Shown: positions 37,167-51,300 of the stretch, in pieces
How the letters are laid out: each line of letters opens with the position of its first letter
Position numbering within the stretch: the stretch's first letter is position 1
DNA from: Amoebophrya sp. A120
Lineage: Eukaryota; Protista; Dinoflagellata
Assembly: GCA_905178155.1 (NCBI GenBank)
Contig: CAJINV010000006.1
Location: forward strand, 4,285,760-4,349,759
Length of the DNA: 64,000 nt
Reading direction: 5' to 3'
Made by a program: the position numbers and the translations under genes
Notes under the pieces: model-generated
The model's database searches: none
What the model was told of the DNA's origin: nothing
What the model saw: the letters and a program-made list of their open reading frames with translations, nothing else

Positions 37167-39275
37167 GAGAACCTCGAGTACCTCCACGCAGCGGTTTCCG
37201 GTTTTAGTTTTGACGCTGCTTACTTGTTACAAAGGTTCTTTATGCGAACTTGATGTCTGCCGCACAGGGCCGCAGAAGTGCTGTGCGGGCGGTGTTGCAG
37301 ATAAATGGCTACGCTGATACGACTTCGCGGGTCCGCGATGGTCGTGCGCAAAGACGGGCTGCCGTGTCGTGGATACACAGGACGACAGTTGTCCGTGGAC
37401 GAGGACGGAGAAAAGATGTAAGTCTCAACTTTTCTGCGCCGCGCCAGCCATCGGCCTTCTTTCGATTTCTGCAACAGATAAACAGGTGGAAAACCAAGGC
37501 GAAACTTTACGTTTGCACCTTATATATAAACGAAGAGTCTACATCTTCTGACATTGCATTCTCATTTCCAAAAAATATCTATACCTGGCGGCAGTGCTAC
37601 ATACCGATGGGCAATTCGCATTTTTTCACTCTGTGCCTTTACTCACATTGTTTCACCTGCATATCATGATGTCGAGACCTTAGTATTACAAGAACTCCAC
37701 TTTCTCTTCCTGGCGTGCATGTTGTACTCTCCTGCCGCACTTCTTCAAACGTGGTTGCTATATATGTAGCTGATTTTTTTGTAACACTTACTGTTAGTTG
37801 TACTGCCTCATCTTCGTGTAAAAATATTCATTGCAAGAATTTTCTGTTTCAAGTGTAGAAGAAGTTCCAACAGAGCTGCTGCTGATAGAGAACAAAATGT
37901 AGTTGCGACGTCTATCAGTGGTCCGTCGCGTCAATCGATCCTGCATCTGCTTCACGGTAAGTAGATGGGAAAAAGGAATCACCTTTCTATGCACGCCTAA
38001 AGCGACATGGAATTATGATTTTTCCCCTCTGCCATAATTATAGTGCATCTATTAGTTGGCCGCCGCGCATGATGTCGCATTCTTTGTCGAGGAAGTGTCA
38101 ACATTAAACGGAACTTATCTGTATTATGCATCGATGATCCGCTCTACTCCATGGCTCTCGTTTCGCTTTTGATAGTGCACGATCCGCGGCATGATTATAG
38201 AGAGCTTTTTCACAAGGTAGAAGTGCACGACGGGCGGCGGTTAATGGCAACCAAATTTTCGTGTTCTTAAGCTTCACTGTATTTTTGTTCGGTGACGTAA
38301 TAATTCTTGACCAGCATGTTGGAAAAGCGACGGTCTGCAGCCGACAAAAGGCAATGCCTAGTTCACTTCTTGATCAGAATATTACAGAAAGGCTCACAGG
38401 TCAATCATTGAAGACGAAGTGCACCTGTGAGTGGATCATGATGCTCCCAGAATTCAAACAAAAATGACCAAGATCGAAAAGAACGCAACTCAGAAAATTG
38501 TCGGTAATTGAAAACCAAAAATGCGGGGGCTGGTGTAAGTACAAGACGAGCAGCTATTCGGTCGTATGTTGTGTACATGTACATGACAATCTCAAATCAA
38601 TCTGACACTAGTCCTCACGCACGATCGCCTTTATTGTTGACTCAAGTTTCTTGCTGCCGCTGGGCCGTCACATAAATCTCGATCCGACAAATCTAGGTCT
38701 GATTGTGTAAAAGTAAAAGGAGAAGGTATGATCACTCCATTCATTTCTCGGGTATTTGTGTAGTTGATGTTGTACCTATGCCTACTAGTATTAACTCGAC
38801 ACAGGAAATAAAATCCGCTTGGATTTATTTTGGTATGATTTTATTCGCTTTTACAACGCAGAACAGATAGGTTACAACGCAGAACAGACTTCACTTTTCA
38901 GAAACAACAGCTCCTACGTTGAAGCAACTTTTACTTTTTCAACAAACAAGTTGTACTTTTTGGACTCTGAAAACTTCGACGTCTTAGTAACTTTCGAAAA
39001 TAAACCTTTCTCTGGTGACGAAAAATAGCTCTCCTGTATCTTTACTTTTTCTTTTTCTCAGGCTTACGAGGCCAAAGCTGCTGTAGCCACCTAGTACTGT
39101 ATTTTTTTTGAACTAGCAGTAGCATCGTGAGAGGAAGGTAAACCCTTCACACGGAACAAGCCACGACTCCATCCCTAACAAACAAACAAAGCTTGGACGC
39201 ATATTTTTCCGTGCTGGCTTATTTCGGCTACGAAATAACTGCCCCTCAACATATCACACCAACAGCAAGGTGAAG

Positions 39276-40787
39276 ATGTGGAAGATGAATCTCCTTTACA
39301 ACAAATCGCCTCGCATCTTCGTCGCCGGCGTCGTATTATTATTTCTTCACACTGCAGCTCTTCTACAACACCACTCCCACTCCGTGAAGATTTTTGCGGA
39401 TGGGGCCTTGTTGCGCCCGCGGGGGACCAGTGCACCACCTCCCGCGAGGTCTGGAGTTCTTCCACCCCTTCTCGTCGCACCACTTGACGGCGGCCGTCGA
39501 CGCTCTTCACGGAGCGCGGGGCCCACGACCCGTTATTCTCGCATCGAAAAGGACCACGTAGAAATTTCTGCGAAAAAGAATGTCGCAGACAGCAAGGATC
39601 TTCCCCGCCTACAGTTTTTTTCCATGGGCGGAGAAAATGTGGTGAACGCGGTACCTTTCTGGAAATGGCAAAACTGGACGGTGGAAGAACTTTACACCCA
39701 CGTGGAACGAGAGATCAAGCAAGAAGACAACGGGAGGCGTAGGGAACTTCCCTGTAGAAAGGTGGATCTGGTTCCCCAGGTGCTACATCTTGGCGGGGAA
39801 ATCCACCTTATCACGGAGCCCTTAGACCGCCGTTCGGTGGGGTCGGAAAATCGCGGAGAGCGGCGCTTGTCGACAGTTCTGCAAGTAGATGAACTGGTGC
39901 TCAAGAAGGATAATTCTGTGTCTGTCGTGGCAGGAGAAGCGAGTGCAAGTCGAACTTCTGCGACGCAGCGGGAAGGAGCAGACCACGTCGACGCTGCTTT
40001 TAAATCTGACGTGATGTTCCAGGTTCTGTTCCACGCTGCAGGTCGCAAAAAGTCGTTCCCGAACAAATCACGGCTCCGCGAGGCGATTGCGCTCTGGCGG
40101 GAAGACGAGGACTTCGAAGCCAACGGAGCGGCGCGGGAGTGGATTGTGAACGAGTTTGGGCCGGTGGCGGAGTGGAACCTCTGTGACGTCAAGAACCTAT
40201 CCAATTTGTTTAATCCGGCTCTGGTGGGGACCGGGTTCCACTCCTCCTTTCAGATCACGGACTGGTACACCCGGGGCGTCAAGAACATGCACGCTCTCTT
40301 CAGTGGCTGGACCGAGTTCGACCAGGACATTAGGCGGTGGGATGTCCGTGACGTGACCAACATGAGCTTCGTGTTTTCGGGCGCGGCGAATTTTAACCAA
40401 AACCTTGGCAGCTGGGATGTGAGTGCTGTAACGCTTATGAGGAATATGTTTGAGGGGGCGCGTAGGTTCAACCAAGATCTGAGTGGATGGGATGTCAGCG
40501 GGGTAAAAGACTTCTGCTCGATGTTTTACAAAGCCGTGGCTTTCAATCAACCGCTCGACAGCTGGGGGAGCAAGCTGGATAAGATGCCTCAGTCGGTCAA
40601 CATGCAATACATGCTGGCGGAAGCGACGGCGTTCAACCAAAGCTTGAAAAGCTTCGAACCCCGTATGCTCCGCGATCTGAACCAGGTCGCGCACATGCTC
40701 CTTCGCGCAGACAGTTTTCGCTATGGCGTCCTCGACAATTTGAGTTTGCAGCACCTGGACACTTTGGGGCCGATACTCTTACTCTAA
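39276..40787 (+). CDS. Intronless secreted/surface protein with DUF285 (BspA-like, Mycoplasma-type) repeats
   Basis: Hydrophobic N-terminal segment, followed by about 25-aa repeats such as WDVRDVTNMSFVFSGAANFNQNLGSWDVSAVTLMRNMFEGARRFNQDLSGWDVS. Confidence 0.9.
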   Translation: MWKMNLLYNKSPRIFVAGVVLLFLHTAALLQHHSHSVKIFADGALLRPRGTSAPPPARSGVLPPLLVAPLDGGRRRSSRSAGPTTRYSRIEKDHVEISAKKNVADSKDLPRLQFFSMGGENVVNAVPFWKWQNWTVEELYTHVEREIKQEDNGRRRELPCRKVDLVPQVLHLGGEIHLITEPLDRRSVGSENRGERRLSTVLQVDELVLKKDNSVSVVAGEASASRTSATQREGADHVDAAFKSDVMFQVLFHAAGRKKSFPNKSRLREAIALWREDEDFEANGAAREWIVNEFGPVAEWNLCDVKNLSNLFNPALVGTGFHSSFQITDWYTRGVKNMHALFSGWTEFDQDIRRWDVRDVTNMSFVFSGAANFNQNLGSWDVSAVTLMRNMFEGARRFNQDLSGWDVSGVKDFCSMFYKAVAFNQPLDSWGSKLDKMPQSVNMQYMLAEATAFNQSLKSFEPRMLRDLNQVAHMLLRADSFRYGVLDNLSLQHLDTLGPILLL

Positions 40788-45300: not shown

Positions 45301-48300
45301 CGCAAGACACACCGCTGTACGACTCGAAAAGCTCGAACACCTTCGCTCTCTTCGCCACAGAGGAGGAAAACAAAGATATCGTACGAAAAAATTGTTTCAC
45401 TGTGGACCTGTGATGCAGAAAATGGAACACAGAAACATTTGTCTTGCTAGACCTGCAAGAAAGTGGATTTTCAAGCGTGTTTTCCCTTGGGAAGCGCGCA
45501 TGACAAATTTTCTGTGTCATGTGTAACAAACTTGTGATGCAGATCTTGCAAAATCATCACAGTGAAACAGTTTTTTCGTGGGATAAAAGAAGCAGAAGAT
45601 GCGATGAAGGCCTGCGAAAAGGAAAAATCCGGGGATGAAGTGTGTGAGTACAGGGTATAAAAGTTGGTTTATGTTCTTGTTCGGAAATTTGTGATGCAGA
45701 AATTATCCACTTGATAGAAGAAGTTTGTCATGCCGTGAGTACCTACCTGAAAAAGCGAAGAAGTCTTTGGAAATAATCCAAATGCGACGAGATAAATCCA
45801 CCTGCAAACATAAGTAACATTATACACAGCGCGTGTCCGCGCAGCACATGTTCGGATCCGGGTATCAAATGTAAAAATGTCTGGGTCTGGAAGAATGCAA
45901 CTTGTGATGCTGCATTTGGATTCCAGAAAAATCTGTATTGCATGAGCATCAAAAGGAATGTAATTTTTGCTACGCGGAGAGGGCATTTGTCATGCGGAAT
46001 AGGCATCAAGAAGCTCTCAAAAAATCTGTGATGCTAGGGCATGCATCACAGACATCAGGGCTCATGCAAAACGTGCATGACAAGTGTCAGAATCTTCCAG
46101 ACCCAGACATTTTTGCAGTTCATACTGGGCCGACGCAGTCCATTCGCGGGTACGAAAACGTGAAAATGGGTCGGGATGAAGATTTATGCTGTGCAAAAGT
46201 ATCGTACTCGTATAAATGCATTACAAATTTCCTCAGCATGAGAACTGGATTTTGTCATGCTGTTTTACCTTAAGGACAAGATTTGTCATGCATAAACGCA
46301 ATTGGTACGAGAACGAGTGCGATACTCTTGCAATTCATAAGATTCGCCGGTTTTGGAATACTTTCCCTTTTGGCAGGTGGTGCAGCATCAGATCGCCGCC
46401 TGGGAATCCGGGGCGAAATTTTCCGCGATTGTCGGTCTGGGACCCCGGGACCACGTGCCGGGAATGAGCGACACTAGTATTGATTTGTTTCTGTTAGTAG
46501 TTTGTCATGCGTTTGCAAATGCAATCATAGTACTCACTTGAATTATGCCGACAGTAGTTCTTGTGAACAACAGTTGCAGTCCTCTACTCTGGTTTTTATG
46601 GAGCGCAAGTTAGTCCCTGTGATGAGTAAAAAGTTAAAAGCGATCCAAAACCGACGTTTCGGAAGCTGCATTGTGCAGAAGGAATGAGTATGGTCTACTA
46701 TGGTTTATGCAGTATGATTAAGAAAGAAGTAGTCTATTCGGGGACTACCTTGCGCTTTATATCTTTCGGAACTTTTGCAATCCACAGATGAAGACTCTAT
46801 GCGAGTGTGAGACAAATCCAGACAAAGCGCGCGCGCTTGCTCGAGGCAATCACTCAGAGGCTTTTTTCTGGAACTGCGGGCCGCCAAGCTGCAGACGCAG
46901 GTCTCTTGTCATTTTCCCGGGCGCTTCGTGCTCTCGCCCATGCCGGCCAACCCCCGCCATGACTCTGCGAACGGAACCCAGCAGGAGCCGCCAGAGTCTC
47001 TGTGAGGGTGGGGGCGCCGGCCTTGGGTACTTTCTGCAGCAAAGCATACGCCGCGGCCTTTTTTTTCAACTCGGAGTCGCCAAAGTACAGGGAAAAGCCT
47101 TTTTTGTTGTTCAAAAAAGCAGAATGTGGCGCAAAAGAGACAGCCGAGCTCGGGAATAGAGGGAGCGGGATGATGGCGGCGCGCTGTTGGCGCGCCTCTT
47201 TCTCGTCGCCCTGAGTCTGCGCGCGCCTTGTTACACGTCCCTTGTGCTTGCCCAAGGCGGTACGGTGCCGCGCGCAGCCGCAGGCAGTTCGTGTGCCCCC
47301 CTTCTTACCTTCTTCTCTCTCCGTTGTCCAGTTCGAACCCCTCCAGGGGAAAGAAGCTTACTTTTCTCGTCAGTTCGAACCCCGCCAGGGGAAAGAAGCT
47401 TACTTTTCTCGTCAGTTCGAACCCCTCCAGGGGAAAGAAGCTTAGTTTCCCACTCAGTTCGTTCTCTCTTTATTCATCTTCTCTGTTTTCAGTTCGTTGT
47501 TCGTTTACTAAAGTTGTAAAACTCGAAAACTAGAACCACATATCTTTCGGAACTTTTGCAATCCACAGATGAAGACTCTATGCGAGTGTGAAGATGGCTT
47601 GGTGGGAAGATGGCTGATGCGCGGCTCTTACAGTGCAAAGAGTTCGCGTGCTTCAGCTGTTTTTCAGGCTATCTTCGGGTGGTGGTTTGAAGAAGTGGAT
47701 TTGCCTTTTTACATTTGGAGCGCCAATGCTGGCGTCTCAGACAGGTCGCAGCGCGATGTGCTGCGTCCGCTAGATCACGACATACCCGCGGGAACTTCCC
47801 GGAACTTAGTCACGATTGGGAGCAAGACCCCGCAGCGCCGCCCGGGTTCCGGGCTCCACCGCGGGGCCCTACCCCGGCGCGTTTCCCACGTGCTCGCTAC
47901 CTAGCTACAACACAGCCCCGCGCGCCTGGATCTCTGCACCGACAGAGCCAGGCTGCCCCGTTGAGTCACATTTGGGGAAGATGTTCGGCGGGCCATGTCG
48001 TGTTCCACGGCTTGGCCCACCTTCACGTCCGGGGCGTGGCTCTGTGGGGTTTGAGAGCTTGGCTTGCGCGGCTTGCTACTTGTAGCTTGCTGTGCCGGCC
48101 GGGTTCTCTTCTTGCTGGCCAGTGTGACCGTCGCAGGGCGTCCCGCGACGAGGACTGCAGCGCGCGTCAGCACTGCCTTCGATTATCATCGTTTCCGCGC
48201 GCTTTCGCTCGTTGGGTGAATTGCGCTAGGAATGTGAATTTATATGTCGTGCGTAGCAGTTATATCAATTTACATGATCAAGCAAGAGGGTTGCACACTC

Positions 48301-51300
48301 CGACATCGGGCTGGCTGCCCGATGTCGACCAGCTTCCGCTGGTTCTCTGTCCTCTATCTAGAATCTCCGCTTCGTCTGGGCTTGCCTGGACTCGGCGTTT
48401 TTTCCCCGCCCTCCCACCCAGCTGCTGCATCTTCATTGCGAGAGACTCCACATTTTTTCACTTTTGCAATCCACAGATGAAGACTCTATGCGAGTGTGAA
48501 AGCGAGTTGTAGGCTGTCTTTTTAGTTTTACGCCTACTGGCATTGATGGAACGAATCGCGACGCAAAGTTATTCTGTTGTCATGCTTACATACAATGCCA
48601 CCTATCTATGTCGTGGCGGCAAGAAAGCGGTATGTCGTTATTTCTCGTTGACGGAAAAACTATGCGATGCCAGCAAAACTAGAAAAGGACAGCATACCAT
48701 ATCGTTCGCTCCCATACCTCGTGGGTGCGACAGCAATCCGCACAGGACGATAGACTACAATCTGATATGGCTTGCTCAGATGTTACAATCTCAAACGTGA
48801 GGACGATGAAGTCTGGAATTTGTGTTGCATGAACAGCATGGGCACCATACAGAGACTTGCGCTTTTCGCATTACAAATAAAGAAGTAGTCTATTCGGGGA
48901 CTACCTTGCGCTTCATACCTTTCGGAACTTTTGCAATCCACAGATGAAGACTCTATGCGAGTGTGAAGATGGCTTGGTGGGAAGATGGCTGATGCGCGGC
49001 TCTTACAGTGCAAAGAGTTCGCGTGCTTCAGCTGTTTTTCAGGCTATCTTCGGGTGGTGGTTTGAAGAAGTGGATTTGCCTTTTTACATTTGGAGCGCCA
49101 ATGCTGGCGTCTCAGACAGGTCGCAGCGCGATGTGCTGCGTCCGCTAGATCACGACATACCCGCGGGAACTTCCCGGAACTTAGTCACGATTGGGAGCAA
49201 GACCCCGCAGCGCCGCCCGGGTTCCGGGCTCCACCGCGGGGCCCTACCCCGGCGCGTTTCCCACGTGCTCGCTACCTAGCTACAACACAGCCCCGCGCGC
49301 CTGGATCTCTGCACCGACAGAGCCAGGCTGCCCCGTTGAGTCACATTTGGGGAAGATGTTCGGCGGGCCATGTCGTGTTCCACGGCTTGGCCCACCTTCA
49401 CGTCCGGGGCGTGGCTCTGTGGGGTTTGAGAGCTTGGCTTGCGCGGCTTGCTACTTGTAGCTTGCTGTGCCGGCCGGGTTCTCTTCTTGCTGGCCAGTGT
49501 GACCGTCGCAGGGCGTCCCGCGACGAGGACTGCAGCGCGCGTCAGCACTGCCTTCGATTATCATCGTTTCCGCGCGCTTTCGCTCGTTGGGTGAATTGCG
49601 CTAGGAATGTGAATTTATATGTCGTGCGTAGCAGTTATATCAATTTACATGATCAAGCAAGAGGGTTGCACACTCCGACTTCGGGCTGGCTGCCCGATGT
49701 CGACCAGCTTCCGCTGGTTCTCTGTCCTCTATCTAGAATCTCCGCTTCGTCTGGGCTTGCCTGGACTCGGCGTTTTTTCCCCGCCCTCCCACCCAGCTGC
49801 TGCATCTTCATTGCGAGAGACTCCACATTTTTTCACTTTTGCAATCCACAGATGAAGACTCTATGCGAGTGTGAAAGCGAGTTGTAGGGTGTCTTTTTAC
49901 AATTACTGGCATAGAAGTAGGAAACCGGACGACGGAGGATTCATTTTTGCACACTGTTGCCATGCATGTTGCCGTGCTCAGTATGCCGCAATTATCCCCT
50001 GTCTCAGTCTCGTTGGCAGAAAAATAAACATTGCTTTATGCCAGTAAAAGACAAAGCACAGCATACCACATCGTTCGCTCCCATACCTCGTGGGTGCGAC
50101 AGCAATCCGCACAGGACGATAGACTACAATCTGAAAGTTCGCTTTTTTTTCCTGGCCTACAAAAATGGGAAAAGACCTCCAGGTGAGCACCCCAGTGAGC
50201 AGAACAACACGGAAACGCTGCTGGAACGCGGAGACGTGAACAAATTTTCCATCTGTTATGCAAGAAAAAAACTGTGTAAGTGTAAGTCTGTGATGCAGGA
50301 AATGCTAAACTGTTACACTTGTCATGCTAGAGGTGCGTCATAGGCCACTTTCATGGGTGTTTCCACGTACTAGCTGCGCACGACAGGTTTTCCCTGTAAT
50401 GCAAAGCGAATTATTGTGATGCTGATCTTCCTACAAAGTATACACTTACACAGTTTTTTTCCTGGATATCTGTCTCAGTCGGGGCAACACGGCGGACCAG
50501 GCAATTGCAGAGTCGCAACAGGAGCAGCAGGCGCAAAACTGGCCGCCGGGCTACCTCACCTTCAACGCGAACTCTGATCAGGGCGAAACGCAGGTCGAGG
50601 TCGTCGGAAAGGTGCACTGGGCGGTCCACATGACAAAGTTCGGCATCAAGCACGGAAACGACTATGAGAGTGCACAACTCGTCGTCTCCCTCCCTCTCAT
50701 GCAAAACACCAACGCCACCCTTTGCCCTTTGCCACTACTATGCATGACAGATTCCGAAAGGTGCCGAAACAGCACTAGAATCTTCGATCACCAGGCTCCT
50801 GTCATGCAAAAACTGCATCTTTGCCAAAGCTTGTCTTGCTGTCGATGCTATCCAAATTATGGGGGAAATAAGTTGTGCACGCGCATAAAGGCACCAGTAC
50901 TTTCATCAACTTCTGCGACAACGAATTTTCGGAGGGTGCTGGCTGCGCTGCCATTATCGACTCCGGCACTTCCCTGCTCGCCGCCCCGTCCGCCGTCATC
51001 GACGCGCTCCAACAGAAATTGCAGATCAAGGAGGACTGCTCGAATTTGGACACCTTACCCGATTTGGAGTTCACGTTTGGCAAGGGGACGCAGTTTGTCG
51101 AGCAGTTTAAACTGCCGCCGAGTGCGTACTATGCATTGCAAATATCTACTCTGGACGACGTCTGGAAGGATGCAAACCTGTGATGCGCGTTTCGGATCAC
51201 ACAAAAATCTGTGATGCGTGGACAACATAAGCAAAAGCGGGCCAATTCTTGTCATCGAAATGATCGGGGATTTGTCATGCGCATAATAGGCATTGGGAAC

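Follow-up and report, generated by a model that had tools for sequence, protein, structure and literature searches.

We analysed a window of 64,000 nucleotides from Amoebophrya sp. A120 (contig CAJINV010000006.1, positions 4,285,760 to 4,349,759), in which one long intron of an aspartic-protease gene holds two tandem modules, each interrupted by cassettes that stand between direct repeats. Our preferred reading, to which we assign a probability of roughly 60%, is that the cassettes, A and B, are truncated or mosaic pieces of ordinary dispersed transposons, copied into a single point, p, of an intronic sequence present in two copies, with the target duplicated each time and the end re-joined upstream after a break. 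The 41-nt repeat R, which borders the cassettes, is target sequence doubled at each insertion and not an attachment site borne by an element. An earlier note, made from this DNA sequence alone, had described an intronic cassette system with a dedicated attachment site; such a system does not exist as such.

Cassettes and duplications in the protease intron

The whole structure is contained in a 3,706-nt GT..AG intron at 46477..50182 on the plus strand. In an RNA contig (run X3, depth 204), 46476 is joined to 50183, with donor GTATTG and acceptor end AG, and the exon downstream matches the Pfam family Asp (PF00026), in agreement with the placement in a 3.7-kb protease intron that had been proposed. 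A repeat search and direct reading of the sequence also recovered the order described before, X-R-[A]-R-[B]-R-h1-Y, spacer, X-R-[B]-R-h2-Y, with two X, two Y, two 867-bp B cassettes and five copies of R, which start at 46771, 47552, 48460, 48927 and 49835. The features are as follows.

46724-46770 (+): X1, conserved 5' part of host module 1, from repeat comparison
46771-46811 (+): R1, left target-duplication copy; joined to 46759-46770, it makes up A's left 53-nt copy, 52/53 identical to 47540-47592
46812-47539 (+): cassette A, 3' part of a ~2,017-bp transposon with terminal inverted repeats
47540-47551 (+): 12-nt copy of the end of X1, directly 3' of A
47552-47592 (+): R2, which is also the left copy of the 41-nt duplication of B
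47540-47592 (+): right copy of the 53-nt duplication of A (12 nt of X1 end plus R2), with X1-type and not X2-type bases
47593-48459 (+): cassette B1, 867 bp, a mosaic of the elements E and Emini
48460-48500 (+): R3, right copy of the duplication of B1, which continues into h1
48501-48683 (+): h1, variable centre, hairpin-forming
48684-48765 (+): Y1, conserved 3' part
48766-48877 (+): spacer, half of a miniature inverted-repeat transposable element (MITE) at the joint of the modules
48880-48926 (+): X2 of host module 2
48927-48967 (+): R4 of host module 2
48968-49834 (+): cassette B2, 867 bp, with sequence, junctions and filler as in B1 and one base different (49680)
49835-49875 (+): R5 of host module 2
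49876-50052 (+): h2 of host module 2
50053-50134 (+): Y2 of host module 2

We defined p as the point at which R, ending in ...GTGTGAA, meets h, which starts with AGCGAG... At the left junction of A, the target runs to ...GTGTGA and the parent transposon resumes in a 4-nt microhomology (GAAA, one base changed), and at the left junction of B, the target runs to ...GTGTGAA, with a microhomology of about 2 nt (GA). The right junction of A is blunt, and that of B consists of a 13-nt filler. Both cassettes depart from the chromosome at the same point within one base, and their re-entry points lie 12 nt apart, the duplication being 41 nt around B and 53 nt around A (52/53 identical). Insertion at a fixed site with R duplicated or carried along, as formerly suggested, is right in its first part, since the right-hand insertion point is common within one base and R is duplicated target; the idea of a carried R fell, as R is borne by no relative of A or B elsewhere.

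The origin of cassette A was traced by comparison of loci in the whole assembly of 115,520,608 bases, which was the genome searched throughout. The parent is a ~2,017-bp element with terminal inverted repeats (TIRs) of 18-20 bp, starting with TAGGTTCTGGTTTTCGAG and ending with CTCGAAAACTAGAACCACTA. Cassette A covers parent positions ~1240-2015; it is truncated at its 5' side, has a TIR that lacks the last 2 nt (TA), contains 42-bp tandem repeats at 47329-47461 and is 90-92% identical to its closest relatives. In place of the features of a canonical TIR insertion, it shows one incomplete TIR and a 53-nt duplication. The 3' end of the A family, ...GAACCACTA, is common to at least seven copies, and the truncation points fall at positions 217, 1045, 1240 and 1599 of 2,017. 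Flanking repeats measured 7-9 bp in four of four two-ended copies of the family (L071, L039, L053, L054), as opposed to 47-60 bp in the four truncated one-ended copies examined:

Cassette A of the window: 53 nt
L070: 60 nt, 98% identical
L048: 47 nt, 98% identical
L047: 58 nt, 93% identical

The 5'-truncated copies (4/4) retain the 3' TIR end, the sequence of the flanking repeat is local to each site, and the TIR-side joints are imprecise (-2, +4 and +5 nt). At a further locus (L033:1456-2308; G000:C2:~11269351-11270203), a mosaic insert is enclosed in one ~47-nt direct-repeat pair of 79% identity; in it, a B-family fragment (B439-624, minus) is in direct contact with two A-family fragments (plus) and with a portion of a larger repeat. 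Truncated or mosaic transposon copies with target duplications of ~40-60 bp are thus present at unrelated loci, and they are the product of a general process and not a property of R. Separately, a sequence 75% identical to A positions 4-345 was found inside a larger multi-kb repeat, of which there are at least nine near-identical copies (L040-L046, L049, L050).

Cassette B derives from two related elements. Element E measures 2,280 bp, has TAT...ATA ends and is present elsewhere in six near-identical full copies, none of them beside R, and Emini is a 503-bp derivative of E, also with TAT...ATA ends, which occurs in precise head-to-tail multimers with a 495-bp period. Pieces of B were found at more than 60 places in the genome, and B is 97-99% identical to its closest relatives. 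Positions 1-108 of B correspond to E462-569, and positions 106-653 correspond to E1733-2280, so that 1,163 bp of E are skipped at a 3-nt microhomology, GAT. Positions 650-812 correspond to E1-163, across an end-to-start junction from E2280 to E1; Emini sequence follows, and B terminates in the 13-nt filler (48447-48459), for which there is no match in either parent or in the target. No TIR stands at the ends of B. By this composition, B is a rearranged fragment: its two ends both lie inside the parents, and it is not a unit with ends of its own. The former statement that A and B are unlike every other element here did not hold, given the internal end-to-start TAT...ATA junction of B and the end of A 2 nt before the family's TIR end.

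We also observed Emini as a monomer and as precise tetramers at L014 (G000:C1:8716382-8719849), L017 and L021, in which the units overlap in a TATA-type joint; the same joint is found inside cassette B. These multimers may reflect rolling-circle or concatemer formation in the Emini family. A reading of B as a Helitron, a DIRS or a circular element was considered and set aside as unneeded, since the end-to-start junction is also found in the genomic Emini multimers.

The two B cassettes differ, as previously reported, at about one base: R2-B1-R3 and R4-B2-R5 are distinguished by 1 of 949 bases (48305, A/T). B2 repeats the truncation point, the internal deletion and the 13-nt filler of B1. Because independent insertions would not reproduce the truncation point, the jump and the filler, B2 is a homology-driven copy, made by gene conversion or by break repair from the other module. 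The module differences nearest to R lie 9 nt to the left and 14 nt to the right, and the copied tract therefore ends within shared homology. A near-identical B beside a diverged h had been taken to be beyond a plain tandem duplication; given the shared junctions, no second site-specific insertion is needed to explain it.

No open reading frame (ORF) in A, B or the parental element E gave a Pfam domain, and neither a reverse transcriptase nor a recombinase was found there. Direct reading confirmed that A and B have no poly(A) tail.

The duplicated host unit

BLAST-type searches with R-h1-Y1 and X1-R1 as queries found X, h and Y in two tandem copies only, and R in five copies, all of them at this locus. 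A covariance model of the Y region, run over the assembly, returned the two local modules only. Neither type of search found an empty X-R-h-Y copy anywhere in the assembly, and both modules are occupied. Exact-pattern scans of metagenomes for R and Y gave no match, and hence no orthologues or empty alleles. The predicted empty host copies with a single R did not appear, nor any further R. Of the proposal that A and B are recent insertions into an older multicopy host, the relative age stands, the cassettes being younger than the duplicated sequence, but the host has two copies only.

X1 and X2 differ at 2/47 positions, and Y1 and Y2 at 2/82. The first 13 nt of h1 and h2 are identical, and their 120-nt middle is 54% identical, compared with 50% (sd 2.2%) for shuffled sequence, which bears out the near-invariant X, R and Y beside a diverged h that had been noticed before. 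The contrast between these near-invariant parts and the saturated middle of h suggests a constraint on the ends of the unit. Coding by X, R or Y was rejected, as the frames are short or stopped and both Y differences would be nonsynonymous.

The spacer corresponds precisely to a terminus-to-middle half of an introner-type MITE of ~258 bp, with ~60-bp TIRs and TAT...ATA ends, whose full element is found in L058; the family has 422 candidate genome matches at 85-90% identity. When the spacer is removed, Y1 abuts X2, and the one-ended half MITE at the joint of the modules has a duplication-plus-insert layout like that of A and B. The host is a plain head-to-tail duplication, an old one, of a unique ~365-bp unit, and a MITE fragment with one end lies where the two copies join.

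Searches for an RNA product gave little. No Rfam match was obtained over the window at gathering thresholds, matches over 48440-48990 at E-values of 10 or less were at chance level only, and a tRNA scan returned nothing for the host module. Folding z-scores for R-h-Y were -2.2 in module 1 and -1.2 in module 2, slightly better than shuffled sequence. A structured RNA is not claimed for the host module, given these weak z-scores and the lack of an Rfam match. RNA contig depth over the modules is 4-7, compared with 204 for the mRNA, and is not above that of other parts of the intron, the RNA data being thin; raw RNA runs X14 and X15 have 3-4 reads only at the locus. The thin RNA-contig coverage of the modules holds no evidence of a stable module RNA or of splicing-out of A or B.

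As a side observation, the layout of h-Y (48501-48765 and 49876-50134), examined by folding only, recalls that of an H/ACA RNA. CUGGCAU/AUGCCAG closes a long hairpin, after which stands AGAAAA or AGACAA, similar to ANANNA; next come a conserved 3' hairpin and then, at the conserved end, ACA and AUCUGA. The sequence is intronic, and the insertions at p leave h-Y intact.

The start of R (46771-46787) reads TTTTGCAATCCACAG and matches, at 14/15 positions, the outer end of one 3' TIR copy (TTTTGCAATCCATAG) belonging to the main introner of the window; Y has a similar GCAATCCGCACAG at 48732-48746. The match at the start of R scores 25, compared with a shuffled mean of 18.7 (sd 2.2), which is about 3 sd, with one shuffle scoring higher. 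This TIR-like start may be a relic TIR or may have arisen by chance.

Elsewhere along the same protease mRNA contig, noncanonical introns of 160-267 nt are removed at 45371-46339 and 50250-50892, with the ends AA..TA, GG..CT, AA..AT, AT..AT and CT..GG. At least two of them coincide with TIR introner copies (45862-46125 and 50257-50468). Further upstream in the window, an ORF of 505 aa at 39270-40787 contains four DUF285 (PF03382) repeats (E 2e-85).

Proposed mechanism and rival explanations

Under our preferred reading, DNA would break or be nicked at p, and the 3' end at p would anneal inside a transposon template through 2-4 nt of microhomology. The template could be excised linear transposon DNA or an RNA. 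The end would then be extended with occasional template jumps and, for A-type cargo, would run off at the transposon terminus, a step that would fit excised linear transposon DNA. Re-joining to the chromosome would take place 41-60 nt upstream of p (41-53 nt at the window locus), and that stretch would in consequence be copied twice. Were the end to break or arrest at p again, the next cargo would be added on the right of the last, and R-A-R-B-R with its common right boundary would result. The second B would follow from homologous repair or gene conversion between the modules, with the identical R and the first 13 nt of h as the homology.

Several points count against this sequence of events. 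Its mechanism is inferred from junction anatomy only. Cassette A is less similar to its closest relatives than B is (90-92% vs 97-99%), and A could therefore be the older of the two, which would favour sequential events at a hot spot. The recurrence of breaks at p is left without an explanation, and the run-off step applies to A-type cargo only, because B has no transposon terminus at either end. In addition, none of the eight solo TIRs of the small introner family checked in the window is flanked by long repeats, and a long duplication is accordingly not a universal companion of one-ended copies.

The resemblance of the A family to retrotransposed copies raises the possibility that transposon RNAs, for example, exact-ended excised introner RNAs, were reverse-transcribed at a nick by the enzyme of a resident retrotransposon without long terminal repeats (non-LTR), acting in trans. 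Such target-primed reverse transcription (TPRT), as carried out by long interspersed nuclear elements (LINEs), would leave copies with a defined 3' end and a long duplication of the target, truncated to varying extents at the 5' side, where microhomology would be seen. The A family does have a common 3' end, variable 5' truncation and flanking duplications, with microhomology at the truncated end, and the genome offers more than 100 reverse-transcriptase ORFs with long open frames, as well as an intact LINE with apurinic/apyrimidinic endonuclease (APE) and reverse transcriptase in L072. We nonetheless consider this route unlikely. Direct reading found neither poly(A) nor a 3' microsatellite; A's defined end is a DNA transposon's TIR end, not expected for the 3' end of an RNA; B has no defined end; and the one LINE copy measured has a duplication of 16 bp and not 40-60 bp. 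In canonical TPRT, the first, specific nick adjoins the defined 3' end, and here the fixed boundary p adjoins the truncated end of the cargo, the reverse of that arrangement. A somewhat smaller chance still is given to sequential independent insertions at a programmed or sequence-determined nick at p, made, for example, by an introner transposase that binds the TIR-like start of R, with every cut taking up another fragment. The right boundary shared by A and B within 1 nt, the 14/15 match of the first 15 nt of R to the outer end of an introner 3' TIR, the seemingly greater age of A by divergence from relatives and a repair in module 2 that is also compatible with a break at p would all suit this proposal; the TIR-like match, only ~3 sd above chance and surpassed by one shuffle, and a predicted transposase cut 24 nt away from p do not.

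The remaining two alternatives fare worse. A mis-assembly that created the second B, or all of the second module, as a duplicate seems quite improbable. B1 and B2 are nearly identical, the short-read unitigs break at the repeats, and no read-level bridge was seen; on the other hand, h1-Y1 and h2-Y2 are distinct and form separate unitigs at about single-copy depth in a short-read DNA run (53 and 31; flanking unique DNA has 24-35), two bases distinguish X1 from X2, the copy beside A is of the X1 type, and long reads far exceed the 1.4-kb repeat unit in length. Least credible of all is the scheme in which A and B are mobile noncoding cassettes that enter at R, either through a target-specific retroelement enzyme acting in trans or through att-type integration of a circle carrying R. 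Long direct repeats between the cassettes, the common right boundary and an identical B in two diverged modules had spoken for it. R, X and Y are found nowhere else, empty copies are lacking, both cassettes are truncated pieces and not units with ends of their own, and the same architecture recurs with other target sequences (L033, L047, L048, L070). A CRE/SLACS-type retroelement is contradicted by the lack of a reverse transcriptase or endonuclease domain in the ORFs of A, B and E, by dozens of unrelated sites and by a target of two copies, and att-type integration by the five R copies, all local, and by relatives of A and B that nowhere else abut R. The expectation that A and B would always adjoin R likewise failed, as their relatives occupy many unrelated sites and never lie beside R. 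No R-flanked element was found that could encode a reverse transcriptase or recombinase, and the ORFs of the cassettes and of the parent element hold no such domain.

Two observations stand beside these alternatives. The short-read DNA unitig over the upstream part of the intron ends at 46757, just before the positions that differ between X1 and X2, which is earlier than a unique k-mer path should give; this early end may reflect polymorphism or ongoing conversion between the modules. The LINE in L072 (L072:2518-5643; G000:C1:~9930017-9933142, minus) is a non-LTR retrotransposon of 3.1 kb that has a target duplication of 16 bp, AGTATGTAAGTACTTT, and a single ORF of 1,020 aa with an APE-type endonuclease and RVT_1. 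It has at least 15 5'-truncated relatives with the same 3' end and adjoins another aspartic-protease gene.

Returning to copying from a broken end, the clean contrast within one transposon family, with short duplications at two-ended copies and long ones at truncated one-ended copies, together with cargo stacked at one and the same base, points to a route of its own, by break repair or by target-primed copying. We suggest, tentatively and as a proposal that is somewhat doubtful, that the locus is one case of an undescribed genome-wide insertion pathway, in which a broken end would repeatedly copy excised transposon DNA or transposon RNA and stack truncated or mosaic cargo with right-anchored duplications of ~40-70 bp. 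If true, such a pathway would be a second, noncanonical route for the spread of DNA transposons and for the growth of introns and genes, in a genome with a known history of runaway intron gain. Were the pathway general, it would account for some of the accumulation of transposon sequence in introns and exons here, and it would leave a countable signature (cargo type, junction microhomology and anchored side) that could be compared between strains.

Comparison with known systems

One-ended or alternative transposition is known from the one-ended events of bacterial Tn3 and IS91 and from the alternative transposition of Ac/Ds. As in those events, the copies here keep one transposon end, with the other end variable; unlike them, the junctions at the TIR end are imprecise (by the offsets given above), a misfit for direct strand transfer. 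To our knowledge, long duplications are not an outcome of one-ended or alternative transposition. The trypanosomatid elements SLACS, CRE1 and CZAR in spliced-leader genes, and R9 in rotifer ribosomal DNA, are site-specific non-LTR elements with very long target duplications, that of SLACS/CRE being ~49 bp. The likeness lies in a long target duplication within a short, tandemly repeated noncoding unit. Those elements are, however, autonomous, carry reverse transcriptase and endonuclease and are always found in one multicopy target, whereas the target here has two copies, there is no enzyme gene, and the cargo families are also found elsewhere. R9 is listed among the references of PMC3636483. 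As to an att- or integron-like reading, the cassette ORFs contain no recombinase gene; the remainder of the genome was not searched for tyrosine or serine recombinases.

The genome of Amoebophrya sp. A120 is known for its introner elements (PMC7789003), and Amoebophrya introners have been published as whole elements with direct repeats of 3-5 nt (PMC7789003; PMC12130899). The spacer and E/Emini resemble them in having TAT...ATA ends and TIRs, but the cassettes described here are truncated copies with 40-60-bp duplications. In the literature searched, where the papers bearing on the subject all concern canonical introners, we found no description of 40-60-bp duplications around truncated transposon copies in Amoebophrya.

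Truncated LINE retrocopies share with the present structure one defined end, a variable truncation with microhomology at the other end and a flanking duplication. They differ in that no poly(A) is present here, the parent is a TIR DNA transposon that makes 7-9-bp duplications when intact, and the duplications measure 41-60 bp, compared with the 16 bp of the one resident LINE measured. A closer likeness is seen with templated insertions of the type attributed to microhomology-mediated break-induced replication or to fork stalling and template switching, or to the repair of breaks with staggered ends. These have in common with our locus junction microhomologies of 2-4 nt, filler, a mosaic cargo drawn from multiple templates and a duplication beside the break, and multiple switches in a single event could account for the stacking. 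What sets the present structure apart is a cargo made up nearly always of transposon sequence, an A family that ends at a transposon terminus, and duplications within a narrow range of 41-60 bp. Overall, the structure works most like microhomology-mediated template-switching insertions, and in part like 5'-truncated LINE retrocopies.

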